A stretch of 64,000 bases of DNA from Adineta vaga (GCA_021613535.1 CP075494.1:12152001-12216000); one strand, 5' to 3'; shown: positions 3,497 to 40,603, counted from the stretch's first letter. Notes: generated by a model from the sequence alone, not told the origin. Made by a program: numbers and translations.

Positions 3497-5876
<2,380 letters not shown>

Positions 5877-17500: not shown

Positions 17501-20500
17501 TGTTTTCTATGCTAATCAAACTTCATACGCTGTTGAAAGTGAGATTCCAGCAGAAACAAAAAAAGTAACGGTTTTCGTGGAAAATCTTGGACGAATCAGT
17601 TATGGACCTGGATTGGATTATAGTCGAAAAGGAATACTGAATAATGTTTTGTTGGATGCGAAAATTGAATTGAAAAAATGGACTATGGTTTTATTAGAAT
17701 TTAATCGTGGTTTAGCGAGTGTAACCGATTGGAAACCATTCGTTCGAAGTGAAGATAGTACTACAAGTCATCTTGCTCGTGGCCCAAAATTATTTCGTGG
17801 ATCATTTACAATAGAAGAAGCACAGGAGATTGAAGACACATTTCTTTACATGGGTACACGTTGGGGTAAAGGCATAGCTTTTATCAATGGTCATAATTTA
17901 GGAAGATATTGGAAAATTGGTCCACAAAAAACATTATACATTCCCAAACATTTCCTTATTAAAGGAATAAATTATCTTTATTTATTTGAAACACATCATT
18001 ATGGGCAAGAAGTTAAACTTGTTGATAAACCAGTTGTTGCAACATAATATGGCGATTTCTCTGGAACATATTTTGCGCTTCTATCTATGTGTTTTTGCTT
18101 GATTTTTGTTAGAATTTTTTTTTGCGATCTTTTTAAGAATAAGTATATTACTCTATATCGTTCTTTATACGCTTTTCAATTGAAGTTTAACTTATTGAGA
18201 CTTTCGTAGACTATGACAAATCGATAGGAATCTATAGAATAAAAATATATTTTTTTGTTTTTCAGGTGATATTTTAATATTTCTCAATGGCACGAATATA
18301 ATCAAACCACCAATTGCATTAACGATTGATCGTGTTAAATCGGAATTTACGGCTTTACGACGACAAAATAAACCAATTCAAATTGGCATATGTCGTTGTG
18401 TTGATCGTTCAATTTTTAATAATGCAACTGTTCAACATTTAGGTTCATTAACAATACATGAATTTGAAAATTTATCTCGTCATGAAGAATCCAATGAAAT
18501 ACATAAATCAACAACAATTGTACATAGTGAATCAAAGAAACTATTAAGTTTATTTTCAAATAAAAAGAAATTAATTTCAAATGGAAAACGAAAATCTATT
18601 TTAGATAAAACTAATGAAATTGATCGTAAGTATAGTTTAAATTTAAATGAATAATTTTAAATAACATTGTTTGATGTTCATAGAACGAAATCTCTCTTCA
18701 AATTCTATGAAACATGAAAATGAAATTTTAACAGTGAAAACAAATGAAGATAAGAATTCATTCATTACACAACAATCAACGAAAAAAACAATAGAACATG
18801 TTGATACTCATACTGACAAGGAATCAAAAGAAAGGTTAGTAAATGAATTTACGGATATTTTATTTCATAGTTTTTATTTCAGCACTTCAAATCGAAATTT
18901 ATCAACACAGATTTTTACTGATGCATGTTTTATCTATCGTCGTCAAGTTATCAAACATCCTCAAGATACCAATGCAATGATTCTTCGTGGTCGCGAAATA
19001 GCTCATGAAGCTGCTAATTCACCAACTATTCCATCTTCTATGCCAAATTATAGTCACGATCAAATTCGTGAACTTTACGGTGAAATCGATAAGAAAACAC
19101 GTCGTTTAAAAGAAAATCAATATATTTTTCATACACCAATGATTGATGCTTGGAACGAAACACCACCTTGGAGTGTATCATCAACATCATCATTGATTCC
19201 AAATCAATGTCCTTTACCAAAATTTCGTTTAGATAAGAATGATGAAACAATATTTATGGCAACATATTTTTCCACAGGTTTAAGTAATCGACGAACTCTT
19301 TCGACTACCGATGATAAAGATATCATTCGTGGAAGTTTTCGTACATCCGTTGGAGAACGTACAAGTGTTAGTCCATCACCTTTGTTACTTAATGTTCGTT
19401 TTGATTATAAGAAATTGAATTCACCAGAAATGATTGCGAAAGATGAATCAAATGTTATTCCAGATTATATTCAATCATATTCTACCGAACAATCCACGGA
19501 ACCATTGAATCATGTAAGTCGATCGATTCATTCAACAAAATACAAAAAGTTTGTTTTCTTTTTAGATCAATTCATCATCATCATCAAAACTTGATCCATT
19601 AGCAACAAAAAATGTCGAGACGATGGATATTGATAGTTTAATTGATCTTGATGATCAAACAGCTATATCTTATCATACAGATAAAGAATCTCAAATGGAT
19701 CTCGAACTTGATTCGTTATTTTCTCGAAAAAATCAACCGACAACTTGTGTTCATTCACAATCAATCGATGTTACTCCACGAATGAAACCGAATGATCTAT
19801 TTAAGACCATCACATCACCAGATGATAGTTGTTATTATGATGCATTAACATCTTCGATTCAATCAAGTATATTTTCAGATAATTTTTTTGAACAAGTTGA
19901 AACACTCAATCATATCAATAAAATTGAAAAACTATCATCAAAACAAATCGACGGAGATGTATCAATTGATAATCTTAGTGAAATTATTCGAGAAATAAAT
20001 CAAACTCCATCATGTATCAATCATCTTGTTTTTGCTTATGATCATCAATCGATTCAACCGCAAGGAGCTGATGCTGTATCAAATGATCAAATGGAAATAA
20101 CAAATACTAAGACTTTATCTCAACAATCTTCTATAGAACCTGAAATCCCTTCAACAAATACTAATATCTATCAAGAATCATTATCATCAGATGATGAGAA
20201 TAATTATCGTCAAATTACAAGTGATATTGATGAAGATTTTGAAGAATTATATCAACGATATTTAACTAATCTTAATCAATATCAAAAAATCTTAGAACAA
20301 ATTGATCAAGTGGAACAAAAATTATCACCAATTGATGAAGAGATCAATTCAATGAATGAACATGTTTCCAAGAATCAAACACAACTCAATTCATCGAATG
20401 TAATATTATCTGTTAAACGACAAAGCAATCATATTGGTCATTATGGATTTGAATTAGAACAAACATTCGAAGGAAAAATCAAGATTTCTTCGATAATTGA

Positions 20501-20858: not shown

Positions 20859-21031
20859 CTATATCGTATTGTTTCTCATAAAAACTACAAAATAATTTGT
20901 AATAATATGTCGATTTACAAATTTTTGATGAAAGATTAAATGAATACTTTCGCATATACTTAGTGTCCTTTCTCTTTCCATTTGCTTGTCTATATATATG
21001 CAAGATCTTTTTCACATTCGAATCATACAAA

Positions 21032-22546
21032 ATGCCAACCATCTACGATATTCAACGCGAAGAAACTTATACAGGAGAACCACGCACAGTTTCGAACTAT
21101 GATACATATAGTTCAGGAGATACAGCTGTTGGCTATATGTCAGCAATAACACCACGTCAGATTATTGTAACTCGGCCAGTAAAAAATTTAGGTGGGGGAA
21201 ATCGTAGTGTAACATCGAAAATGACTGTTTCACAATCGATGTCGAGTAATGCAATGCCATTACGAAGTGCAAGTGTTGGACATTTAGCTTTGGTTCCATT
21301 TAATAGTCAACGTACGGAAGAAAAACGACAATTGGCAGAATTAAATGATCGATTTGCAGAATATATCGGCAAAATTCGATATTTAGAAGCTGTCAATCGT
21401 AAACTTAGTCGTGATTTGGATAATATTCGAAATAAAAAGGGTATCGGTTTACAACGTATACAAGAAATCATTGCACGAGAAAAACGAGAAGCCGAAGATA
21501 CATTAAAACGTATGGATGATGATATACGTTCTGGACAAAGTAAACGACAAGAAGCTGAAACACGTTTAAAACAAGCTGAACAACGTTTAACCAATGCACA
21601 ACGACCTGATCAAATAAATAGTGCGAAAGATCAATTACGGCAATTACGAGAAAAAATTCTTGATCTTGAAAAAAAAATTGAATTAATTCGAAAAATAATT
21701 GCTGATAATGATGAAGAAATAGCACTCTACAATGCTGAATTACAAAGAATTCGATCGGATATTGCTAATCTTATAACTGAAATAGCAAACGAAGCAACAC
21801 AAAAACAATTACTTATGGCAGAAAAAAGTGTTCTTGAACAAGAATTAAAAGCGATTGATACGGCACATAAATTTGATGTTGAACAACTTCGTTCAAAAGT
21901 TGCCATTGCTAATGTTGATCCTGCACCATTCTTTGAAAGTGAATTAACTTCAGCTATACGTGATATACGTAAACAATTTGAAAATATTACTGATCAACAA
22001 CAACAACAATTACAAAATTATTATCAAGCAAAAGTAAGTGCACTGATTGAATATCATCAACCGAAGCAACCCGTCGAATCTCAATGGCAAACTGAAAAAA
22101 TTCGTGAAATAACTCGTAGTATGACTGATATACGTGGACGAGTGAATAATTTACAAATGGAAAATCAAGATCTCGATCGACAAATAGCTGATATACGGCA
22201 ACAAATTCAATCATCAACATATCATGATGATCAACATTTACTTAGTGAACAAAAACGTTATCGAGAAGAGATCGATCGTTTGAAAGGTTATATTAATGAT
22301 TTAGAAAAATATCGTACAACATTAGAAGAAGAAATACGACGATATCGATTGTTATTAGAAGGTGGTACGAATCAAGTTGGTCTACGACATTTTGCTGAAG
22401 AAGCAGAAAAAATTATGAATCGAGGAAGATCATTATTAGATTCAATGAATTTACGTTTAGTGAAAAATTCATCTTTACCAAGTAGTTCACATAATGTTCG
22501 TGAAGTCACCTACTCAAAAACGTATTCATCTGCTGGAGGTGGCTAA
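21032..22546 (+). CDS. Intermediate filament protein 1 (intronless CDS, ~504 aa, no lamin-tail domain)
   Basis: Coil 1A EKRQLAELNDRFAEYIGKIRYLEAVNRKL; rod end LEEEIRRYRLLLEG; TATA-like tract near 20991; ATG at 21032. Confidence 0.92.
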   Translation: MPTIYDIQREETYTGEPRTVSNYDTYSSGDTAVGYMSAITPRQIIVTRPVKNLGGGNRSVTSKMTVSQSMSSNAMPLRSASVGHLALVPFNSQRTEEKRQLAELNDRFAEYIGKIRYLEAVNRKLSRDLDNIRNKKGIGLQRIQEIIAREKREAEDTLKRMDDDIRSGQSKRQEAETRLKQAEQRLTNAQRPDQINSAKDQLRQLREKILDLEKKIELIRKIIADNDEEIALYNAELQRIRSDIANLITEIANEATQKQLLMAEKSVLEQELKAIDTAHKFDVEQLRSKVAIANVDPAPFFESELTSAIRDIRKQFENITDQQQQQLQNYYQAKVSALIEYHQPKQPVESQWQTEKIREITRSMTDIRGRVNNLQMENQDLDRQIADIRQQIQSSTYHDDQHLLSEQKRYREEIDRLKGYINDLEKYRTTLEEEIRRYRLLLEGGTNQVGLRHFAEEAEKIMNRGRSLLDSMNLRLVKNSSLPSSSHNVREVTYSKTYSSAGGG

Positions 22547-23332
22547 TCATATGCCAAAATTCATATTCGCAAAATAAAAAGAACAAAATAATATTTTCTA
22601 GTTTGAATAATAATTTTCCCTTCACCTTCCCTATATAATCTTAACATCAATAAATACATATATATATATATAAATATATATCTGCATATTTAATTCTTTA
22701 GTAAATATAAATTCAGGTGCGCATTTATAGTGAGTGACATATTTATTTATCGTGAGTGTGTCCTTTGTCTTGTTTTTATTATTTGCATGCATATCGAAAG
22801 CTCTCTACTTCAAACTAGACACACTATTTACTTTAAAACGGTCAAATATACATAGAACGAATAGTATTCAATTTCTTCGCTTTTACTTGATCGCTGTCGG
22901 TGTCTTTAGTATGAATTATATTGTTTGTCTCGTATGTATGCGGTCGGTTACTAACCATACAGAGAGTAAGGAGAAGAAGAAGAAGAAAAAAAAGAACAAG
23001 TAAAGATTTGTTCTTTTCATGCAAAAAGAAAAAAATAATTAAATGCGTATGCAAGACAACGGGCACGACCGATCGAAAGAAAGGGTAAAGACGAACATGT
23101 AAAGATTTCTTCGTTTTGTTCTTTCTCACCGAATCATAAATATACAGAGAACGAAAAGAAATTGATCAATAAAAGGAACATGTCTATTCATACAAAACTC
23201 ATTTCTTCTCTTTTTTCACTCTCCATATAGTCTACCTGTGTGCGTGTGTATATTCGCTTATTTTACTGATTGAATATTTTCATTTTGTTTTCAGATCTTC
23301 TCATCGACACAAATAATATTACAAACAACAAA

Positions 23333-25064
23333 ATGCAAGATTTCGATAATGACTTTACCAAGAGTAGTACCTCATCATACAGTTCATATAAATCTCAGAT
23401 TGGACCACGAACAACCAATGTTCAACGTCGTGCAGGTGGTCCACCAGGTATCATGACACGCATGTATCAATCTTATTCAACAAGTGGTGGTAGTGGTGGT
23501 TTCAGTGCTGGAGGTATGGGCGGTGGAATATCAAATTTAGCATCAATTGCAGGTCTTGGCAATTTTGCTGGTATTCCATTACGACCAAATCGTGGTTCAT
23601 CAGCATTAGTTGCTGTAAATGAAACACGTGAAAAAGAAAAACGTGAATTATGTCAATTGAACGATAAATTTGCTCAATATGTTGAAAAAGTTCGTTTTCT
23701 TGAAGCACAAAATCGTAAATTACAATTAGAATTAGAAGCTTTACAAAACAAAGCTGGACAAGGTTCATCGAAAATTAAGGAAATGTATGAAGTTGAAATG
23801 AGCGAAGCCAAAAAACTCATCGATGATACAACACGTGATCGAGCAGCAGCTGAAGTTAAAGCTCGTGATGCTGAAAAAGAAGCTGGCCGTTATCGTAAAC
23901 GTTATGAAGAAATTTTAAATAGTCGAGAAACTGATCGTTCAGCTATTGATCGTCTTCAACAACAAATTGCTGAAAATGAAGCACAAATTAATCTATTTCG
24001 TCGTCGTTTAGCTGATCTTGAAGATGAAGCACGACGTTATAAAGCTGAAACACAACGTTTAGCATCGGAAATTGCTCGTTTACAAAATGAAATTCAAAAT
24101 GAAACATTTGTTAAAAGTTCACTTGATACAGAAAAAATGGCATTAGAAGATGAATTAGCTATGTTAAAACAAATGCATGAAGCCGATCTTAATGAATTAC
24201 GTTCGAAAACAGTTGTCGATGTTAATTTAGATCCATCACATTTCTTCCGTAATGAATTAGCACAAGCTATTCGAGATATTCGTAATGAATTTGAAGCTTT
24301 AAATGATCAACAACGTGCAGATTTACACAATCGATATATGATGTCATACAATGAATTAATTCTTCGTCATCAAAAACCTGATCTTGATCCAATTCAAAGT
24401 GAACAACAACGAATTCAAGAAGAAAAATTACGTACAACTCTCTTAACGACACGTAATGAAGTTGCACATATGAAAGCACGAAATGAAGAATTAAATAATC
24501 GTATTCGAGAACTTCAACTACATATTGATCAAGAACGTGATGACGGTATGAATTGAACTTTAACGAGAGAAAAAAAACAGATTTGATTTTCTTTTCTTTG
24601 TGATATTTTTAGGTAGTCGATTAATACAAAAACGTGCATCTGAAATCGATGAATTACGTCGTAAATTAGAACAATTGAAGAAAGAATATGAAGAAGTAAC
24701 AAATATGAAGACATCATTAGAAAAAGAAATCAATACATATAGAGAATTATTAGAAGGAACAAATAATCGTGATGGTCTTAAACAAATTGTTGATCATGTC
24801 GTTGAAGAAGCTCGACGAATGGAAGCTGAACGAGCAACAGGTGGAGGTATTGCTGGTTCAATCGCATATTCAGGTGGTGGTCGTCAAACAACAATTTCAC
24901 GTACATTTATTGCAAGTAGTGGATCAAGTGCAACCAATGCAGGCATTAGCGGTATAGTTGGTAGTCCTGGTCGATCTACCGCCAGTTATAGTGGTGGACA
25001 AGGAAATGTTAGTGGATCATTTTCACAAACATCCAGCCGTCGAGAATATACAGGACCAAGTTAG
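23333..25064 (+). CDS. Intermediate filament protein 2 (~554 aa; intron 24546-24612; Gly/Ser-rich head and tail, no lamin-tail domain)
   Basis: EKRELCQLNDKFAQYVEKVRFLEAQNRKL; rod end LEKEINTYRELLEG; lamin-length coil 1B (172 residues from the LND asparagine to the MHE histidine). Confidence 0.95.
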
Positions 25065-27032: not shown

Positions 27033-30000
27033 ATGAACATTCATCGATCTTCTTCATTAGTATCTCAACAAGCATTTGAAAACGAAGAAGATTCCTTAAC
27101 GTTCAAACAATCACAAATTATTCTACGAATAATGTCATCAAAACATACGATGTTAGCAAAAACGTTTAATTCATTCGGTATCCCACTGAAATCAAATGGT
27201 AGCAAAGCAACGACTGTTATTGCAATTCAGTAAGATTCACATGATATTCTCTGATCAAAATAATCTTACGTAACTCATTCAATTAATTATCTGTTTACTT
27301 ATTGATTATCGAGTAATAGTCGTATTATTTCGTCAGAAAGATGTAATTCAATAGGGAATAAGATGAGAAGAAAGAGTCAATTGTCAATAACAGCATGTGT
27401 TACGATGTTTTAGACAATGTGTCTGTCTTCAATGATGTTAATTGTTAATAAGAATCAACAAATCTTTGATAATCAAAAAAGAAAGAATATCGGATGCAAT
27501 CACTCGCACAGAGGAATATCGAACGATTGAGAAACCTTTAGATGATAATAGACAGATCTGTCTGTTGTTATTCATCGTGTACAGATACTTCTGTCTAATA
27601 TCATTTACGATAGAAATAATAATCGTTTATTTTTATTGTTCAAATGATTAGAATTGACTTTTTAACGAAGAATTCATTTTGAAAATGATATTTTATTTTA
27701 GAGAAACTCGTAAACATGAACAATATGATATGAATTATTTGAACAATCGTTTTGCTTCATATGTTGAACGAGTACGATTTTTAGAAGGTCAAAATCGGAA
27801 ACTTCAACTTGAAATTGAGCAACTACGGTAGAATGTCTTTTTCTTGTCAAATTCTTTTCTTATTGAAAATCATCTTTGTTTAGTTCACAATGGACGTCAC
27901 AAAAGAACAGAATGAAAGACATGTTTGAAGTTGAAATACATGAAGCTCATCATATTATTGATGAAACAGAAAAAGATCGTATTCAAGCTGACCTTCGGGC
28001 AAGACATGCAGAAGAAGAAGTATTACGATTAAAAGACACGTATATACAAAGAACTTAATGATATTATCCTTATCGAAATCTTTGCCGTTATGTTTTAGAT
28101 ATACATCATTAGTTGGAAAAGGCTCCGATCGACGAAAAATCGATCAATTACAAAAACAAATATCCGACAACGAAGCAGATATTAATCTATTTCATCGTCG
28201 TCTACGTAAGATTTTCTTGTCTTTATTCTTAAAATACGATTTTGTTTTTTGTTCTCTTGTCCAGATGATTTAGAAGAAGAACAAAATCGTTATCGAATCA
28301 CTTCTCATAATCTTATTTCGGATATTCAACAAATAACTAAAGAATTAGATAATGAAATAATCACACGAATACAATTAGAAAATCAAAAAGAAAAACTTGA
28401 AGAAGAAATCGAACTTTTAAAACGTCTTCATGCACAAAAAATTGAACAAATTAAACAGATGAGTTTGAGAAATGTATCGATTGATCCAACGAATTTATTT
28501 GAATATCAATTATCCAATGCAATTAAAAGTATTAGAACAGAATATGATCATCGAAATTATCAATTAAGAGACGAATTAGAATCATGGTATCAATGGAAAG
28601 TTTCACAAGCAGTATGAAGAATATCATTTGCATTTTCTTAGTTCATTTTATTCTTCTAGATTCAAGATTTACAATCTTATCAAACGATTGAATATTCAGA
28701 AAATCTTCGTAATCAAGATGAATATCAGAAATTACAATACTTAATAGCAGAATCTCGACAAGATATGGTGACGATGCGTCAAAGAGTAAGTCGAACGGTT
28801 TTCGATGAGGAAAATGTCAAAGAATTGAAATTGATTTTTCTTTTTTAAGAATGGAAATATCGAAAATCGTATTCAAGAATTAGAGAGATTGATTCATGTT
28901 GAACGAGATGGTCAAACTCGAGCTACGGATGAACATCAACGTCAAATAAGAGATTTACGCGCACGTCTCAACGAACTAGATCAAGATTATAATGAATTAA
29001 TTACAACAAAATCATCTCTTCATTCAGAAATTGATGGTTATCAAAAATTACTCGATCGAGGAGATCTAAGGTACGATGCACATGTTCTCGTTTTTCGTAT
29101 TCGAAAGTTTCTCTCATCTTTCGCTAGTAATATAGATTAACGAAAAATTTCTTTTCTTACAACTCATTTTTTAGCAAAAGTCTTTCAAAAATATCAACAA
29201 AAGTTCAAGAACAAGCATCTACTAATTTGTACAGTGATAGATCAAATACTAAGTTGTATCCGCAATACTATCAGAAAGCAAGCAGTGAGCATGGTAAAAC
29301 TTGAGTGATGCATGTGTGCCATTGCACGTGTTTTTTATCGTATCCATTGAATTGCTCTATGAATGTTCGAGATTATACTTTGAATATTTAATTTATATTT
29401 TTAGTTTTAGGAAAGAACTATAGAATCTTAACACCTTATGTACCATTTAAATCAGTAGCATCTACTCAAACAGAATCAACCATATTCGATCAAGTCTATG
29501 GTAATTATCGACGTCCTGTAACAATTAGTTTTCATCTTCCCGCGATGTCTATTGTTGAACAATCATGGTCACAACAATGGAATGGAAATGATATTAATAC
29601 TCGACATTTAAAGACAAGGCCGCGTTTCGAGATGAACAGAGGACGAGGATATCGACAACGTAAATCGATTACACCACCGAGTTCAGACTATACAGATGCA
29701 TATCTATCTGTATTTGCTCCCAAACAAATTCCTCGAAGATCTGCATATCGATTAACGACTCCAATTTTCACAAATGTTGCACCACTTCCATTCGTATCAA
29801 AACGAACAGATTTTTCTAAAGACAATGAATTTCAAACGAGCCAAACTCGTTTTAATCCTATAAGCAATAGTTTATCATGGAATTCATTTGATAAGATTAA
29901 ATCTGATCCTGTTCATTCAACTTCTGCTCCTTCATCAAACTTTTTATCGAATATATCTACACACTATCAATCCGTTTCATCACAATACTCGCCTTCAATT

Positions 30001-33000
30001 GAAAATCAACTATCCAATGCGAATGATTCGCCATCGAAAGAAACAACTTATGTTCAGTCTCAATTATCTCCATCTGTATATCCAATTACGGATCGTTCTT
30101 CATCCCCTTATGAAAATATTGATCAATCGAGACTACCTGCTGATATTATCTCTTCAATACCATCGCAGCAGTCTATGCCATTATCATCAATCCATGATGT
30201 CAATCAAGATGATGCAAGTATAGAAAAATTTGAAAAATCAGAAATACTTTTATTACAACCTGAAGAGAATATTGATTCATCTGACATCGAACAGCCATCA
30301 TCGATTATTATGCCACCAGATGAATCTTTGATAACTCCTATAGACACAAAAACTGAATTAGAACGTTCTTCATCTGTAGAAAATCTGTCAATTGCTGCAG
30401 TTAAACCAATTGAAATTCTTGAAAATACTATTACTAAATATGATACATTAATTAATCAAATCTCAGACATTCTTGCCAGTGTAACACCAATAACTTCAAA
30501 ATTAAGTAATATGAATCCAAACAAGAGTACACTCGATAATGAACTTTCATCAGATAGTTCACTTACTCATCAACGTGAACATACTAAAGCACACAAATTA
30601 CCAGAACCGATTAAAAAACCATGTATACAACGAGCGAACCGAAAAGATATGATTCGTGGTGATTCTTATAGTAAACTTTTTACAGCTATTACAGATCTTG
30701 ATAAGGAAATGACTCCCCCAATGGATGTTTCAAAAGCGTCATCCATTGAACAGATAAAAGAAGAAACTGAACGTGAACTTTTCGATGAAGATCCAACATT
30801 GACGACGTTATTAAACAATAATAAGCAAGCAACAAAGATTGAATTGGTAGGCGAACAACAATTCTCTACAACAGACGAACCCACAAACATTGACAATGAA
30901 ATTTCCGGAAACGAAAATAATGTTATAGAATCTGAAACAAAATTAATCATCGATGTATCAAATAATGACATCATTACGCAGGAAACTGATTCTTTTTATG
31001 ATGACAACAATGTAGGACAGCATGAAACAGTGGCAAATAATGACGATAACGAATGCTTATCCTATCAAAGTCTTAAAGAAGAAGAAGAAGAATACTCAAC
31101 ATTAGAACTAGCAGCACATGTCATCGAAACATCTGTTGCTCACGATCAACAAGTTATCCCAGATCAATCAATAACTGCAGAAATAATTCCTAACGAACCA
31201 CAGACTTTGTTATCGAGTACAGCTGATGTTCAATTTCTTCAGCCGAAAACACAAGCGAAATTTCTTGCGCGACAACTCAAATCTATTAGTTCACTTGAAG
31301 TATCATCAAGTTCATCGGAATATGCTGATCGAAGAACAACTTCTCTGGATTCCAATGACTTTCAAGTTAGTCAAGAAGAACCACTTAATGATACTAAAAA
31401 TTCTTCAAATCTTCAATTTTTATCTCCGACTGATTCCTTTGAAAAAGATACTCTACCTGTTGAAGAACATGTGAATACAACTTCCACTGTTGTTAACGAA
31501 GAAAACAGTATTCAATCTAGTGCGGAGACAGAATTAAATAAAAGTGATATTACCAAACAACTTGTTGACAATATTGGAAATGAAACGATCGTAGCGTCAC
31601 CAGCATTAGTTAAAGTTGTCAGTCCAATTGATAGATTGTCAGATTTAATTAGCAATCGCTATACAAGCAGTGATGTTTACCATGGTTATCTAGGTGAATA
31701 TATTCAATTTAAAGAAGTAAGTAACTATCTCTACGTTTCTAATACACACACAAACACATACATGTATGATATGATTTTTATTAGAATTTACGAGAAATGA
31801 GTCCTGATCATGTTCAACAAACTGTTTTGCTTTCTCTTCGTCAAACTATCTCGACACCTATAATGCCACATCTTGAAACAGTTTCAAGTAATGTAACAAA
31901 TATGCAAATAATGACTCCAATGGAATCAATAACAATTGAAAGTAAAGAAAAAGACGATCATCAAACTCAAACTGGATTGAAAACAATATCAATGACAGAT
32001 TCAACAGAAGAATTGGAGAAGTTTTCGATTCAGCCGAATCGTATGTTAAAAGATAATATTGTTGAGACACAAGAAATCATTCAAAATCCTGTAAAATTCG
32101 AACCAATATTAGAAAATTTGTCTGCAGATAAACAGGAAATTCTAGTGACGCTCACTGCTGAAAAACCGATGTCAATCGAAGATCTGAAGGTAGTTTGTAC
32201 TAACAATCACTAGTAACTTTATGTCTATATTAATTTTTCTAGAAACCACCTACTCCACCCGTCAATAAAATCGAGCCAATACAATTGTTTTCGTTCGAAT
32301 CGATGCAAGATGTTGACAGCATTGAAACTCCATCATCCACAGTGCCGGTAACAGTACGCTGAGAGAATATTCTTTTTACTAAGTCTAAACTTTTAGATTC
32401 TTCTACCTGTCGACAAATTGTCAACAGCTAGTGTTATTCCATCAACGCATACAGATTCTATTAATACATTGGAAACCACCAATATGGATTCTGTATCATC
32501 GAAAGTAATTGAGGACGATATGCATACATCTGTCGATACCTCATCGACTTCGACTAGTCCGGTTATTCAAACTGTTACACAAATATTTGAAACAAGTATT
32601 GTTTCTAATGAGGAAATATCAGAAATTCAATCTTCATTAAATGAAATGATGGTATGTTATGGTCATTGAGTAGACGTTTTTCAATTGTTCAATTTAGGAT
32701 GTCTCTATTGCTGATGAGAAAATGGACGAAATTAAATCATTCGTTGACGATACGACATCTTCCTTCGTTACTGTTGATGAGACTATTAGCAGTGCAGCTA
32801 CTTCTTCTCCTTGTTCTAGTATTATAGAGGATCAACCAGCAATTAAACAAGTAATCTTATTGAAACAGTCTTTGAGCTTAACAACTCTGTTTTACTTAGG
32901 ATTCGGAACCTATCAATAATCAAACTAACATTGGACAAACCACATCAGCCGAATTTATCCAGAATCAATCTTCTCCATCGAACGAAAACCATCAAGTTAT

Positions 33001-35796
33001 AATTTCTGACAAATTGGAATCTTTTACTATGGAAGAACGAATGAGTTCGATAACAACATCTTCTAAAGTATGTATTATTTATTCATTTTATATTGTTTTT
33101 AATCGATTAAATATAGGATTTGTCGGAGAAAAATACCATGCAAATACCTTCATCTGTCATCGATACAGTTATTTTCGAAAAGATCGATGTATTACCAACA
33201 CCAAAAACGGTAAATTAATATTTCTCTCTTCCACCTATATCGTATCTATCTTTTAGAATGCATTAACACTTGCTCTTGAACATCAGCAAGAAAGTTCTGA
33301 AAATGTTGTTCATGTATTAATGGATAATATCGCTCAAATAGTTTCATCACAATTAGAATCAAGTACCGCAACGACTCCAGATCATGCTCTTGCAGAATCT
33401 CTACCATTAGAAGTAATGAATTTCATTTTAATAAATCTAAGTGAATTATCCTTTTCTATTTAGACCAATGATGATGTACTACAATTAGTAAGTTTACTCA
33501 AAACTAATCTCATAGGGGGGAAAAAACTCTTTAATCTTTTCTTTGTAGGTATCAACGGCAAATAAAGATGGAACTATTCTGCCTAAATTAACGGCTGATC
33601 TTCGTGCAATATCTCCAGAAAATACAGAACCTAATTCTTTTGAATTAATTCATGCTTTACGTGGTCATAGTATTGCTTCACCTATTTCACTTGATCAACA
33701 CTTCCTACCACCAGAAAAATCATCAAGTTCAACAACATCATCTCCAATAACCAGTTCAGATCGTTATGTTTCTTATGCAATACATCAAATGAATGACTCA
33801 TCACAAGATCGTTTACCAATTATACCAATAGCAGAAGATATGCCTGACTACGCGAATCGTGAAGAAAAAGTTCTTTTAGAACCATTGCTTGTTGTTCATC
33901 GATCAGCACTAAAAGAAGATGATTTAACTGAATTTGATGCAACAGATAATTTAACTTCATATTCCGATGATATACTGTATCGTCGACTCTATCGTTCATC
34001 TCCAGATCGACGAAATCATTTAGATACAAGTAGTACTGATGATGATGTCGACGAAGAATTCGAAGAACATGATTTAACAAATATTCATCGTATTAGTGAT
34101 AAAGCAACAGACACAAGTAGTAGTATCAGTACAAATGAAGGACGTTATCATCGTTATGATCGAGTCACAACACCCTCAACTCATGAAAGTTCATTATCAC
34201 CTGCAAAACAACAACCTGATGATATTTATCTTATACCAGGATATCCTGGCCTATGGCGAACAACAACAACAACAGGAGCAGCAGATAATGGCGATGAAAA
34301 TTCACCAATCGATTATGATGCAGATGATGAAACAAAAGCAATTATAAAAACTAGGGTGAGTGACAGAACTTCTATTATTAGAACGTAGTATGAACAATCA
34401 TACATGATTAGTATATAATCGAAATGAACCATTCAATTTGAATTAAAATATATACATATGTGTCTCGTCATATGGGGAGGTCCAGACATATTTTGATCAT
34501 TCTTTTCAACCAAGATATTATCTTTTCTAAGTAAACACGTACGCACCATAGACAAAAATAACAATTCAAAGATAAAACCACATGTGTATCGTTCTCCTAT
34601 CTTTCTAGATTGTTTTGCTAAATATAAACTGATCATTCCCATCACATACGTGTCATCTGTCTATCTTGTATATTTAGATTGCAGCGCCCGTCTCTGATTC
34701 TCTACGACGTCCATTATCATTCCAAGCTCATCGCGATCAAACTACAAGTCATCTTCCAACTGAAATATTAACCACTGGTATACCTTTACGATCAGAAATA
34801 CTCGACGTATTTAATCAACCTGTAAATGATTTGACATTTGATATTTCCGAAGCGGATAGTTATCAAACATGTCCATCATCCATAGCTAGACCACCGAAAC
34901 CAATTGAATTGAATGAAAATAAAAAACCTCTAGAAAAAATTCATTCAAGTCCTGAAGAAAGTATTTTTCTAATTTGTGAACGTGAACGTGGAGTATCTTT
35001 ACCTATTACAATGAATATTGATTATGATGATATTGCATTTCGTTTATCAACATCAACACCAAATGATGCACAATTATGTTCGTCCATAGCAACTGATTTT
35101 TCATCAGCATTACCTTCCAAATCAACTCCACCTATTCAAGCAAGTACACCTTCATTAAATAATCCACAAAAATCAACAACTTGGCTAAATAATGTAAATA
35201 CAGTTACAACAACAACCGAAGGATCAGATGGACGTATGTAATTTTTAAACTGTTCCTTTTCGAATGATCAGTATGTTTTGTTTTACTTTCTTAGCACTTC
35301 AATCTCGTGTAACATTTCAAAAGTCTGCCAAAGGTCCCATTAGTATCTCTGAATGTCATTCACAAGGACATTACATCATTGTCGATAATACCAGTCAGTC
35401 AAAAAATATTGATCTTACTAATTGGATAATATGTCAAGAAAACAATACGGGAGAGAAAATACTCTTCACATTTCCTGAATATTGTCTTTTAAAACCAAAT
35501 CATTCAATTAAAGTAAATAATCGGATCTTTTTCAACGATACTTCAATCAATCAATCTATCTCATTTAGATCTTTTCAAAAACATATAAATCTGAACAAAG
35601 AAATGATGATGATCTCATTGCTACGTCTGTGTCAACATGGCATACAGGTTCGCAAATTGTCACAACATTAATCAACCCTGATGGCAAGGTGATTATTAGA
35701 ATTCTTCTATATATACAATAATCTTACTCTTCTTCTTCTTTTTTTTCTTAATTTTAGGAGCGTGCTACATTAACAAAAAAAACAATCTCCCCTTGA
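27033..35796 (+). CDS. Giant intermediate filament protein 3 (~2,270 aa, 22 coding exons): rod + ~1,700-aa S/T/E/D/P-rich region + lamin-tail domain
   Basis: Exons 27033-27229, 27702-27827, 27884-28039, 28099-28205, 28265-28611, 28660-28785, 28850-29070, 29175-29293, 29405-31716, 31785-32189, 32243-32347, 32397-32651, 32698-32850, 32900-33067, 33117-33209, 33257-33412, 33464-33487, 33549-34355, 34678-35233, 35295-35512, 35569-35688 and 35758-35796 join in frame (6810 nt). Motifs: LNNRFASYVERVRFLEGQNRKL, EIDGYQKLLD, and LTD TFQKSAKGPISISEC..GHYIIVDNTS..IDLTNW..FTFP..STWHTG..TTLINPDGKERAT. Confidence 0.85.
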
Positions 35797-36708
35797 GATA
35801 CATTTTCTATTTTTCTTGTTTAGTTACTATGATTTCTTTTTCTTTTTTAAATATACGAACAAAAACTAATGATCTCATTTTGTCTTTCTTATTGTCCTTG
35901 ATCAATATCATCTAAACAACATGTCAATCGAATACATTGATCTCATATTTATAGTAATAGATGATGGAATTTATATCGTAAGATTTAGTTAGATAACAGC
36001 TGCTAAGCAATAAAAAGCGAGAATCTTCCATCGAACAAATATGGACCTAAAGAATTCTTTCTTCGCTCGTGTTTTTTTATTCTTTTCTTAATAATGATTA
36101 TAATCAAACCAATAATTCCGTTTATTTGTGTCTACATTTATAATCAGGATGTAGTAAATACGAAGAATTTGTAAGTGTAAACGAACATTTTTGTTTTACT
36201 TGAAGTTATTAGGACCAAAAAAAACTGAGGTATTGTGAGGTTAATTAAGAATTAAACAAATGATGTCTGTCTTTTCTTGATGACATCCCGTGAAAAACAT
36301 AGTTAATGACCTTAGACTTTCCTATTAAGGATTAAAATAGATTTTGACGTGCTTATATCTGGAAAAAAAGATGGCCTAGATGAATCAATTCTTTCAATCA
36401 ATTCAATGATTATTATAGACGAAGAGAAGAAAAAACCGAATGTCCTTGGATAACAAAATCCTTAAGAAAGACGTTAATCTTATCTTTTGATTAGTTCACT
36501 AAAAAATCAATTGAAATATAAATGTCATCTTTTATTTTTCGATTTAGTTGAATAAAGTAGAATATGTATTATGACATGTACAGGAAAATCAAATCAATCA
36601 ACGACACAACCGGTTCAAAGAGCATGATGAAGGACATCAGATTGTCTGAATAGCACATAATTAATCGTATATTTCATAAACGATTTTTCTCTCTTTCTTT
36701 CTTGCTAA

Positions 36709-37979
36709 TTAAACATGACGTTTTTTATTTATTCCATTGCTTGTTGAAGAATCGAGAGATGTTCGACATCGTAAAAGTTGAACAGTTGTGGTTGATATTC
36801 GTCGTTGACTGGTAGTAATATCACTCATAATTCGTTGTTTTGTTCTTCCAAGATAACGTCGATTGATAGGCAGTTCAACAGTTTCTTTCGTTAAATGCAT
36901 TTTAATTGCTATACTATGAAATAATCGTTTTAATTCATGCCGAAATGCTTTACCCGTAATAGCATAGAGGAAAAAATTTATCTGAAATCGATTAAGTGAT
37001 TTTACTTTTCTTTTTTTTGTTTCGAAGAAAAATAAACTTAACTTACACAGTGGTTTGAATATTGTAAAGTTTCACATAATGGTTTGAGATAAGCTTGTGC
37101 AAATTGACTATTATGTTGTTTATGTATATTCGTATAAAGTTGTAAACAAACCATCGGAAATGAAGTTAATAGAAAGAAAACAGTTACAGCAAGAAGCATT
37201 GTTGTCAATTTTCTTGACATTGAAGTTGACAATTTATTTTTATTTCGATGTCGTTGAGATTGATAAATTTGTAATTTCGATGTTGAGCGACGTGCTTGAA
37301 ATAAACCATGAACTATAATTAGATTAATTGTTAATAAAAATATAAATGGTACCGCTGAATAAACAGCAGCATCAATCCATGGCCAAATACGATGAATAAA
37401 AAATTCATAATGTTCATGAGTTGTACATTCATTTTCTAATGATAAATAATGCGTAAATACGAAATGAATATTGATCATTAAAATGCATACGACAAGTATA
37501 CAAACAGATATTCGAGCACGTTGTACAGTACAAATTGAACTTGCATGTAACGGACGTATGACAGCTATACAACGATCTGCTGACATCATACAAACAATCC
37601 AAACGCTCGTATCCGAAACAGTATAGAATATAAGAGAAAGAAATTTACAAGCATATGTCGATTGTAATAATAATGACCATTTTCGATTAACAAAATAAAT
37701 CCACATAACTGATAGACCAAGAAGTAATACACTTGTATCAGCGATAGCTAATATACCCATATAATAACATGTTGAAAGATGAGACATACGTCGACGTCGC
37801 ATGATAACGAAAATCAAGGTATTACAAATGACACCGGTCAAGACCATACAAGGAAATAGTACAAATGCAATTTGACTAGGAAGGGTTGATGATAATACTG
37901 CTGTTGAGATGGTCGTATCATTGGATTGAATGGTTAAATTAGTATTTGTTAATAAAGAATCTTCCTGATGACTGATCAT
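36709..37979 (-). CDS. Rhodopsin-class orphan peptide-type GPCR (FMRFamide-receptor-like group); intron 36982-37046
   Basis: Seven hydrophobic segments; GVICN (TM1), LAIAD (TM2), MSADRC.AV, YSAVPF, TSFP, YSNHC|INFFLY. Confidence 0.9.
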
Positions 37980-40603
37980 CGAACATAATCTAATAGTTGA
38001 ATTCAAAATTGAAAAGAGAAAATTTCTTTACGAAATTGAATACGTCGTCGATAACAACACCTGGAATAAATCGTACAATTGAAAGATGAATATATCTATC
38101 TCTCAACGAACAAAGACTGAAATGATTATATAAATAAATAAATCGTTGAGAAGAATTCTGCTTTTAAAAACCTAGAAGAGAAGAGAGACAACGAAGGAGC
38201 AATAATACTTCGTCTTAACTTGAGTCATTTGTATCGACAATGTTTGTCTCTTCTTTTTCTTTTTGATTATTCTTATTTTCCTATCTCGGATCAAAAAAAA
38301 CCGAGAAAAGAAGAAACAGAAGAAGAAGAATGTCTCTGTCCGAGACAAATCAAAACAAGGACACATTCTAATCAACGACATGGAATATTCTTATTGTTAT
38401 TCATCGAACCACCTACGAGGTTTATGATATGAAAAAAAAACGAGGAAAAAAGTTCTTAATACACCTAATAATTTCATTTTTCTAAGGTGCATATTAATAT
38501 GTCTCTTTTTCATTAAAACATGAACCATATAAGCAGAAAAGAGAATCATTTCTTTCTCTTTTACTAAAAGAATGTTAATCAAGATCAGCTTCATTTACTC
38601 TTGTTTTCTTCTTCACTTATTTTTGTTTGTTAAGTCGAAGTCTTTTTTTTCATTTGATTCCATATCTGTGCAGATTTCTTTCTCTTACATAGTCAATACT
38701 TATTACCAATATTTTCTTGTCTTCGCGAAAGTTGATCTTTTCTATTCTATGACCTATGATGATCTCTCTCGAGGTATTTTCCTTCTGGGAGATTGTTATT
38801 GGTTGTCAACATATATTTATTTATACATTGATATTCTCAATTATGATGCTGATTTCAAAGATCAGAAAATGATAGGAACAACTGAGTTCTAATAATATCT
38901 CGCTAAGTGAAAAAAAAACGAGAGCATAAACTGTAATTGATCCGAATCAATGTTACTGTTTCATCAACGAAGAAAACTTATGGATCCAATTCATTGAATG
39001 CCTGATGATAGAGAAATTTGTTGGGCTAAGGAAGAAAACATATACACACAATTAAGATGTCTGAGTGGAAGAATCAAACTATTGAACATAATACGACAGA
39101 GACGACAATATTAATTATGAATAAGATGAAAAGAAAGATTGGAATTGTCTTGTCCTATGATGCGTATAAGACGAGACGAAGGACAATGATTCTAACCTCC
39201 ACTATCCCTCCCATTCTTATTACAAATCTTAACAGACTCCTCTGTCTGTCACAGTATGTAGGACGAAGACAAGGTCTCACTTTCTCATCCGAAAATTTGA
39301 CAGTCCTTAATTATCGAATTATGACAATAATATTGATAATTATTCAAGATGACAACGTCTTTTACTGTTGACTCTAGTTGAAACGATGAATGTTCATGTT
39401 CAATTGGTTCATTTCATTGTCTGTGATTTCAGACATTCTTTTCCGTATTAGAAAGAACAAAAAAGTGTATCATATCATGTTGATTTAGAAGTTCTTTGAA
39501 TACTTCTCATAACTTGTTTAATAGCAGAAAGAATCAAACATTCTTTGTTTTCTAAAACGAAACAATTTCGAATATTCTCTACTTTATACATCTATGTGCT
39601 TCGATTCTAGTCAAGATATATAATTCAATCAATGATAAATCATCGGCACTATATCTGATGAAAAGAATCGAGACATTAGACTAGACTAATCAGGATTTTT
39701 ATCTTTCGGAATATCAATTGACGCATACAGAAGAAAAAGTGCTAAGACGAAGATCGATTCTTTTATTATTCGAAAAAAAAGAAGAAGAAGAAGAAGAAGA
39801 ACAAGAGAATATTTCTATCTATACAATAATATCGTTAAGTGATATAACTTCTAATTGATTGTCTCGATGTCAGTGATGATATGTGAAGGTAAATATCCAT
39901 ATACTTAACTAGATTGTTGTTAAGAATGATATGCTTATTCAAACATAAACTAATAAAATCATTCTAAATGAATAAATACCAATTGAATTTTTTAATAGTT
40001 TGATTTTCTTGATAATTCCGTGGATTGCCAAGAGAAAAAAAAACGGAATGTTGGGTACTTCCTTTACTCAATATAAACAACATATATTCGGAAATGAACT
40101 TGAAATATAATTACGATTCATGGAAAATATTCAGTAAGAACTATGATCAAATAAAAGAAATCTAACAAAAATAGGAAAATAAAAAAAAGAGATGTTACTC
40201 AGTAATCTAACTAATCATATAATTACGAATATAGCTTGGTTTAAGTGATCGAATGAGAAATAATATATTTAAAAGCTAATATAATTACTATGTTTTTTTT
40301 CTCTCGATTTTCAGACACATCAGTACTTATTCGTTGGTATGTTTTAGAAGAAAGTTAAATTGAAAATCTTTTTCAAAAACAAAACATTGTTTGGATATTA
40401 CTTTCTTTTGTTATTTTATCTCTCTTCATCAACGTAGTTTATCTATCGTTACATAGCTAACCTTTGAAAGATATTTCTTCTACAATAATGTATTATTTAT
40501 TCTGTTGAAAAATGCCAAGATACGAAATACACGAAAAAAAGTTTTTATGTAAAACAAAGAAAAAAAACGAAGTTCGATTAATTAATCTTTCAAAATAACT
40601 TCT

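Follow-up and report, generated by a model that had tools for sequence, protein, structure and literature searches.

Does a stretch of DNA in which a dozen apparently unrelated reading frames follow one another encode a single giant protein, and if so, what kind of intermediate filament (IF) protein carries its lamin-tail domain (LTD) at the far end of an arm of ~1,700 residues? The question is raised by a locus of the bdelloid rotifer Adineta vaga. It lies on contig C5 of a genome of 100.8 Mb in six contigs, within a window, i. e. the whole stretch of 64,000 nucleotides (nt) that was analysed (GCA_021613535.1, CP075494.1:12152001-12216000; all positions below are counted from its first letter). 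Lists of open reading frames (ORFs) and three-frame translations show separate pieces at this locus, as a preliminary description of the sequence had noted before joining them into one giant IF gene; the observation as such is confirmed by the present sequence analysis, and its interpretation is partly supported. Window positions 27033-35796 on the plus strand very likely constitute one gene with a 22-exon structure, and the overall best explanation, which appears probable, is a single giant IF gene whose product may serve as a filament-anchored spacer or cytolinker.

The protein sequence itself is already public as an automatic model. Exact mapping of protein onto DNA identifies the locus as one protein-coding gene corresponding to GenBank entry UJR22812.1, a protein of 2,269 amino acids (aa) that carries no name beyond its automatic annotation ("hypothetical protein I4U23_025842 [Adineta vaga]"). 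The entry was found by searching the 770-aa exon 29407-31716, to which it is 100% identical, against 1.84 billion representative proteins. Similar models exist in five other bdelloid species.

One transcription unit or several genes

The mapping reproduces the 22 exons that had been joined in a single frame beforehand, including the junctions 29070/29175, 29293/29405 and 35233/35295. These exons extend across 27033-35793, where a TGA stop (35794-35796) follows, and all 21 introns are of the GT-AG type. Most introns measure 46-69 nt, the longer ones being 472, 104, 111 and 322 nt (Table 1). At the local base composition, the 802-codon open frame has a probability of ~1e-27.

Four lines of sequence evidence favour a single transcription unit that joins head, rod, insert and LTD. 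The first joint at issue is that between the short tail exon behind the rod and the big exon that opens the insert. Here, the phase-1 donor of the tail exon matches the phase-1 acceptor of the big exon, an identical phase pair is found at the ohnologous (sister) locus elsewhere in the genome, and a direct splice from the rod to the big exon would break the frame. The big exon is conserved at the amino-acid level right from its acceptor (..NY.ILTP....TIFDQVYG.YRRP). A separate gene starting from the ATG at 29545 was considered and rejected, given that this Met is replaced by Thr or Ile in the orthologues and that conservation extends upstream to the acceptor. Hence, the big exon cannot start a protein. 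Exon 34678-35233 and the first LTD exon are likewise conserved from the acceptor, with no conserved in-frame Met near their 5' ends.

This conservation from the acceptors without a conserved early Met, together with gaps of only 111 nt (tail exon/big exon) and 61 nt (last insert exon/LTD), makes it very unlikely that two or three adjacent genes on the same strand, i. e. a short-tailed IF, a disordered protein and an LTD protein, have been wrongly fused. In A. steineri, moreover, introns are short throughout, every one between rod and LTD measuring at most 118 nt, and joined models exist in six species. What could be said for such a fusion comes from the sister locus, which public annotations split into pieces (796, 1,979 and 177 aa in A. 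ricciae; UJR26172.1 with 851 aa in A. vaga) and at which a conserved 'MATSS...' ORF before the LTD exon could be a separate start. In addition, bdelloids are reported to use spliced-leader trans-splicing, so that, in principle, a downstream gene might start at an acceptor.

A different doubt concerns not the existence of the giant product but its share. In the neighbouring IF paralogs, the homologue of the tail exon is an ordinary short tail ('GLKQIV.HVEEQAR'), which is terminal in the neighbouring paralog without LTD; the 42 aa kept in the giant protein are regarded as what remains of it. Reading through the donor of the tail exon leads to a TGA at 29302-29304, three codons on. The locus might thus mainly make an ordinary short IF of ~470 aa, either by retention of the intron or by a transcript ending after the tail exon, with the giant form as a minor isoform. 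This alternative is compatible with the best explanation, since it only concerns which product dominates, and it is judged unlikely. Any intron soon meets a stop, so that the stop alone means nothing, and a pattern scan of the 111-nt intron (29294-29404) found neither AATAAA nor ATTAAA. Furthermore, no other part of the gene is under less constraint than the tail exon, whose ratio of nonsynonymous to synonymous substitution rates (dN/dS) of 0.65-1.6 suits a linker more than a functional C-terminus. In three Adineta species (A. vaga, A. ricciae and A. steineri), the exon measures 119, 107 and 83 nt, always 2 mod 3, and the downstream frame is thereby preserved.

Table 1. Parts of the giant intermediate filament gene in the window
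Feature	Window position	Strand	Basis
Exon 1, start codon and head domain (aa 1-66), followed by the 472-nt intron	27033-27229	+	Exact mapping
Six rod exons (aa 67-424)	27702-27827, 27884-28039, 28099-28205, 28265-28611, 28660-28785, 28850-29070	+	Pfam Filament
Short tail exon (aa 425-466), phase-1 donor 29293/29294	29175-29293	+	Sequence read directly
Big insert exon, 2,312 nt (aa 467-1237), phase-1 acceptor	29405-31716	+	Exact mapping
Small insert exons 1-4 of eight	31785-32189, 32243-32347, 32397-32651, 32698-32850	+	Exact mapping
Small insert exons 5-8 of eight	32900-33067, 33117-33209, 33257-33412, 33464-33487	+	Exact mapping
Insert exon, 807 nt, with strongly conserved motifs	33549-34355	+	Alignments, exact mapping
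Last insert exon, 556 nt, phase-1 donor, preceded by the 322-nt intron	34678-35233	+	Exact mapping
Three LTD exons and TGA stop	35295-35512, 35569-35688, 35758-35793; stop 35794-35796	+	Pfam LTD, exact mapping
AATAAA, candidate polyadenylation signal ~213 nt past the stop	36009-36014	+	Pattern scan

The eight small insert exons are separated by introns of 46-53 nt and flanked by introns of 68 nt (5') and 61 nt (3'). The long insert intron at 34356-34677 measures 322 nt in A. vaga, where an ATTAAA occurs at 34442; its counterpart in A. ricciae has 317 nt, that in A. steineri only 54 nt.

Rod, arm and lamin-tail domain

The head, whose end '...ATTVIAIQ' is kept in the orthologues and in the ohnolog, leads into a rod at the place where head and rod had been expected (aa ~1-425). 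Pfam Filament (PF00038) matches UJR22812.1 at aa 72-423 with 138.1 bits (cut-off 40) over profile positions 2-309 of 313. Exon by exon, the profile is recovered at 27703-27825, 27885-28037, 28267-28611 and 28850-29071, corresponding to its positions 2-36, 42-88, 103-200 and 242-311. As judged by alignment, the rod is lamin-like with a long coil 1B, which is typical of the cytoplasmic IFs of protostomes: it aligns without a gap with residues 29-283 of lamin A, and its coil 1B is ~41 residues longer than that of vimentin (54 residues in the query vs 13 in vimentin). The helix-initiation motif of coil 1A (consensus LNDRFASYIxKVRFLExxN) is present as LNNRFASYVERVRFLEGQN and aligns with vimentin and lamin A. 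At the end of coil 2, the helix-termination motif of A. vaga reads EIDGYQKLLDRGD as compared to the consensus EIATYRKLLEGEE, i. e. it is recognisable in a degenerate form; the orthologues have EIAGYRKLLDGRE and EIADYRKLLEGED.

At the opposite end of the protein, Pfam LTD (PF00932; cut-off 34.3 bits) covers aa 2154-2264 with a score of 45.4 bits, from position 2 to position 107 of the 109 in the profile, and in the exon-by-exon scan the profile is matched on exon 35297-35512. Whole-protein Pfam scans of these long proteins missed the domain, which was recovered when the C-terminal 170-250 residues were scanned alone. Its AlphaFold2 model reaches a predicted local distance difference test score (pLDDT) of 70-86 and superimposes on the Ig-like domain of human lamin B1 (7dtg_A) with a Z-score of 14.3 and a root-mean-square deviation of 2.5 Å, 116 of 118 residues being aligned, while the structure match after 7dtg_A drops to Z 7.8. 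The earlier claim of a complete LTD that ends in TISP is thereby borne out. The C-terminus, ...ATLTKKTISP, lacks a CaaX box. A nuclear lamin was considered and rejected, as this end is neither a CaaX box nor the VVAEKIVT[LV]K terminus of the bdelloid nuclear lamins, which have no CaaX box either and show the normal short spacing between rod and LTD (PMC10125929). Inspection by eye revealed no basic cluster of the nuclear localisation signal type in the tail exon (SKSLSKISTKVQEQAS...).

Between these two domains extends the insert, aa 467-2145, the composition of which agrees with the Ser/Thr/Glu/Asp/Pro-rich region of ~1,700 aa described previously. It contains 13.9% Ser, 9.6% Thr, 8.0% Glu, 7.6% Asp and 6.6% Pro, amounting to 46% for these five residues, and bears a net charge of -130. 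With 3.98 bits, its amino-acid entropy is ordinary. Hence, the insert is not of the simple-repeat type, and the low-complexity label given to its exons at the outset does not strictly apply.

The proposal that the insert is probably disordered agrees with the structure prediction, apart from a few short conserved helices. AlphaFold2 was run with family alignments over aa 425-1300 and from aa 1700 on. In the first of these parts, pLDDT is ~30 except for isolated helices, and in aa 1700-2157 it is ~30 (~30-40 in exon 33549-34355) without secondary structure. The helix at aa 791-825 (KPIEILENTITKYDTLINQISDILASV) stands out with a pLDDT of ~88, and others are predicted at aa 561-570, 885-902, 1207-1218 and 1244-1259. 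All of these fall on blocks that are invariant or nearly so among 11-19 homologues. The same degree of conservation is displayed by the motifs TSSDRYVSYAIH, TEFDATxNLT, SSTDDDVDEEF and IPGYPGLWR of exon 33549-34355, which also holds the conserved DADDE, and by the invariant motif ERERGVSLPxTMxIDxDDxAxRLSTSTP of exon 34678-35233. A long disordered arm dotted with conserved recognition elements is the most fitting description of the insert, though it stays a prediction because the underlying alignments are shallow.

Two bdelloid lineages and the sister locus

An N-terminal Filament domain combined with a C-terminal LTD is annotated in six bdelloid species of Adineta and Rotaria. Besides A. vaga, these are A. 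ricciae, A. steineri and three Rotaria species, with public models of 2,169-2,321 aa. The orthologues of A. ricciae (P0040, 2,173 aa) and A. steineri (P0041, 2,169 aa) have the same 22-exon structure, and the three Rotaria models (2,194-2,321 aa) carry Filament at aa 67-423 and the LTD at the C-terminus. Among the three Adineta species, five of the six rod exons are equal in length (exon 4 measures 110 nt in A. steineri vs 107 nt), the LTD exons are identical in length with 218, 120 and 36 nt, and the length differences in all 13 insert exons are multiples of 3 nt only. For the big exon, 38 homologues were found in the protein set mentioned above.

Constraint is unevenly distributed along the gene. 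Values of dN/dS were calculated by NG86 for A. vaga vs A. ricciae and are rough, with dS near saturation in this AT-rich genome. They amount to 0.20 for the rod, 0.65 for the tail exon, 0.38 for the big exon, 0.63 for the middle of the insert (aa 1238-1700), 0.19 for its last 445 residues (aa 1701-2145) and 0.22 for the LTD; the insert as a whole yields 0.39. The last 445 residues of the arm are thus as constrained as the rod, and its least conserved part consists of the eight small exons. The pattern recurs in other species pairs, and the values for the insert middle range from 0.63 to 0.86.

Such figures bear on the idea that the window copy is a duplicate in decay, with constraint relaxed and a long open frame that persists without function. 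A rod identity of only 76% between A. vaga and A. ricciae would fit this idea, given that the ohnolog's rod exons compared by eye appear much more similar in these two species, as would the degenerate motif at the rod end and the fast-evolving insert middle. Yet the 6.8-kb coding sequence is intact, its 21 introns are conserved in three Adineta species, orthologues exist in Rotaria, all insertions and deletions are in frame, and dN/dS stays at ~0.2 in the rod, in the LTD and in the final 445 residues of the insert. Decay is therefore regarded as extremely improbable.

The sister locus lies on the minus strand of contig C2 at ~5.497-5.511 Mb (5497000-5511500) and shows the same order of parts, i. 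e. head, rod, tail exon, big exon, conserved C-terminal motifs and LTD. It has an additional exon between tail exon and big exon that encodes a C2 domain (Pfam C2, 79.8 bits). This exon opens with a phase-1 acceptor, lacks a Met ahead of the domain and carries a TGA stop of its own. A. ricciae and two environmental bdelloid-like contigs likewise have the order Filament, C2, big exon. Before its LTD, the ohnolog shows a gap of 1.4-1.6 kb that may contain a separate start.

Orthologues of the sister lineage are found in A. ricciae, Rotaria sordida and Didymodactylos carnosus, and their public models divide the parts differently. In A. ricciae, the three models given above hold Filament plus C2 (796 aa), the insert alone (1,979 aa) and the LTD alone (177 aa), while C2 plus insert are combined in D. 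carnosus and insert plus LTD in R. sordida; the A. vaga model UJR26172.1 consists of the big exon alone. Probably, the ohnolog is under-annotated in A. vaga and the bdelloid annotations of the sister locus are split wrongly.

In a tree of the C-terminal 570 residues, the three Adineta and three Rotaria proteins of the window type form one clade with a support of 99/99, and the sister lineage is separate with 92/90. The protein comparisons show that the two paralogous lineages predate the split between Adineta and Rotaria. The window lineage has lost the C2 exon as well as any separate start exon of the LTD, and it appears to be committed to the giant form.

Three further observations concern the sister lineage. 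A conserved ORF, MAT(S/T)S...FMFH.RP.VFEHPITYNLPS, precedes its LTD exons and is separated from them by a short intron. It is located at 18078-18305 of the A. ricciae locus sequence L006 and at ~3550-3720 (minus strand) of the A. vaga sequence L004, and it starts the 177-aa LTD-only model of A. ricciae. The window gene has nothing like this ORF, as the intron at the corresponding position is only 61 nt long. The paralogs of the C2 type also contain two to four tandem repeats of ~55-80 aa with the near-invariant motif TKTT[LF]E.[IL]RD.ITHPIATITEKIQSV, which are common to Adineta and Rotaria: three in P0039 (aa 1190-1330), four in P0011 (aa 1725-2000) and two seen in P0046 (aa 1735-1850). One degenerate copy (...LRQTISTPIMPHLETV...) is present in the window protein at aa ~1250-1270. 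Finally, ~1.1 kb of apparently non-coding DNA between tail exon and C2 exon of the ohnolog (A. vaga L005 ~3510-4615, minus strand, vs A. ricciae L006 7735-8865) is as conserved as coding exons, with 57-58 of 60 bases identical at best between the two species. This stretch may be an internal promoter, an untranslated region or a splicing control region.

Known counterparts, possible function and neighbouring genes

Is the layout of the window protein unusual? Within the A. vaga genome it is, as far as the sequence can tell: ~9 other IF loci have their LTD 0.2-1.5 kb downstream of the rod end, as compared to 6.2 kb at the window gene and 11.4 kb at the ohnolog. The literature on rotifer and Adineta IFs, on the locus tag and on giant IFs with an LTD yielded no paper describing the protein. 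It belongs to the IF family, for which such a tail layout has not been described, and the unusual architecture asserted at the beginning is thus upheld.

The closest parallels to its ends are the cytoplasmic IFs of protostomes, such as nematode IFA/IFB and the non-neuronal IFs of molluscs and annelids, a group described in general terms as having a lamin-like rod and an LTD (PMC10125929). Like the window protein, they possess a short head, a long coil 1B and an LTD tail without CaaX box. Their LTD follows close after the rod, however, whereas ~1,720 residues and 6.2 kb lie between the two in the window gene. The bdelloid lamins also share IF rod and LTD without CaaX box with the window protein, but have no giant insert and a different C-terminus.

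The arm, in turn, resembles the tails of nestin, synemin and neurofilament-M/H, in which the rod is likewise followed by a very long, charged and largely disordered C-terminal extension; tails that project from the filament are the basis of the side-arm concept of IFs (PMC11151108). These tails end without an LTD and often consist of simple repeats such as KSP, whereas the rotifer arm is acidic, has a normal entropy and unique conserved motifs, and bears a folded Ig domain at its end. No similarity of the insert sequence to the tails of nestin, synemin or neurofilament-M/H was found, and the likeness is one of functional analogy only.

Another point of comparison is the squid neurofilament gene, from which NF60, NF70 and NF220, one of them giant, arise by alternative splicing of tails. 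The tail of NF220 replaces the LTD instead of preceding it. With one rod and alternative tail exons, the squid gene resembles the sister locus with its C2 exon. Unlike the squid gene, the window gene keeps no alternative tail exon.

By analogy to these systems, the rod of the window protein would co-assemble into cytoplasmic 10-nm filaments, perhaps together with the neighbouring LTD-less paralogs. The long acidic arm would then project from the filament wall as the tails of neurofilament-M/H, nestin and synemin do. Conceivably, docking sites would be provided by the terminal LTD as well as by the helices and motifs conserved within the arm, and the protein would then act as a filament-anchored spacer or cytolinker. 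This side-arm or scaffold mechanism is put forward tentatively, as a possibility that falls short of being probable. A role in the filament layer of the integument, phosphorylation of the arm and a link to desiccation are proposals only.

A still wider scenario, which is rather doubtful in its entirety, would combine both loci. Bdelloids would possess an ancient IF family of two lineages with an acidic, disordered and motif-bearing arm of >1,600 residues that ends in an LTD, and the rod of the sister lineage could instead be joined to a membrane-binding C2 domain. The proteins would be filament-anchored cytolinkers that tie the dense filament layer of the syncytial integument to membranes and partners. 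The alternative tails would have been divided after genome duplication, leaving the window copy with the giant form only.

Several points weigh against the explanation by a single giant gene with a filament-anchored product. The stop three codons past the tail-exon donor means that a short isoform could dominate, and a search with aa 385-560 as query, which covered only proteins of 0.55-1.75 times the query length, returned no protein fragment spanning the junction. The public models are automatic predictions, and annotators split the sister locus into two or three genes. As to the rod, the motif at its end is degenerate in the A. vaga copy (EIDGYQKLLDRGD) and it evolves faster than the rod of the ohnolog, the exons of which were compared by eye; because of both, the ability of the rod to assemble is uncertain. 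Disorder was predicted from alignments that were only 11 and 19 sequences deep; the crude FoldIndex is ambiguous in this respect with 56% of windows negative. The dS values obtained by NG86 are rough in the AT-rich genome.

The value of the giant gene lies in the position of the LTD. This domain normally follows right after the rod, and the known giant IF tails, i. e. those of nestin, synemin and neurofilament-H, are without it. A conserved protein with a folded LTD at the end of a disordered ~1,700-residue arm offers a natural test of LTD function in cytoplasmic filaments and of side-arm network organisation. For the filament layer of the rotifer integument, which is little understood, it supplies a concrete candidate at the molecular level. 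With the C2-bearing sister gene, it also illustrates cleanly how tail modules evolve once a whole genome has been duplicated.

The window gene stands third in a tandem cluster of IF genes of the cytoplasmic type. Its two upstream paralogs (20963-25064, plus strand) have short Gly/Ser-rich tails without LTD. The one at ~21.0-22.5 kb is intronless and encodes roughly 505 aa, and the one at ~23.3-25.1 kb contains one intron. In the rod, they are 27% and 39% identical to the window gene, as compared to 40-60% for the rod exons of the ohnolog. The three-gene cluster is also kept on the ohnologous chromosome, and A. steineri shows the same gene order, with two shorter Filament genes upstream and a seven-transmembrane (7TM) receptor gene downstream on the other strand. 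In the window, the IF gene is bounded on its 3' side by a 7TM receptor-like ORF of 322 aa (37038-38006, minus strand) just downstream. In A. steineri, the same position is occupied by a 7TM gene of the Srw/rhodopsin type; at the sister locus of A. ricciae, such a gene is found a few kb further downstream.

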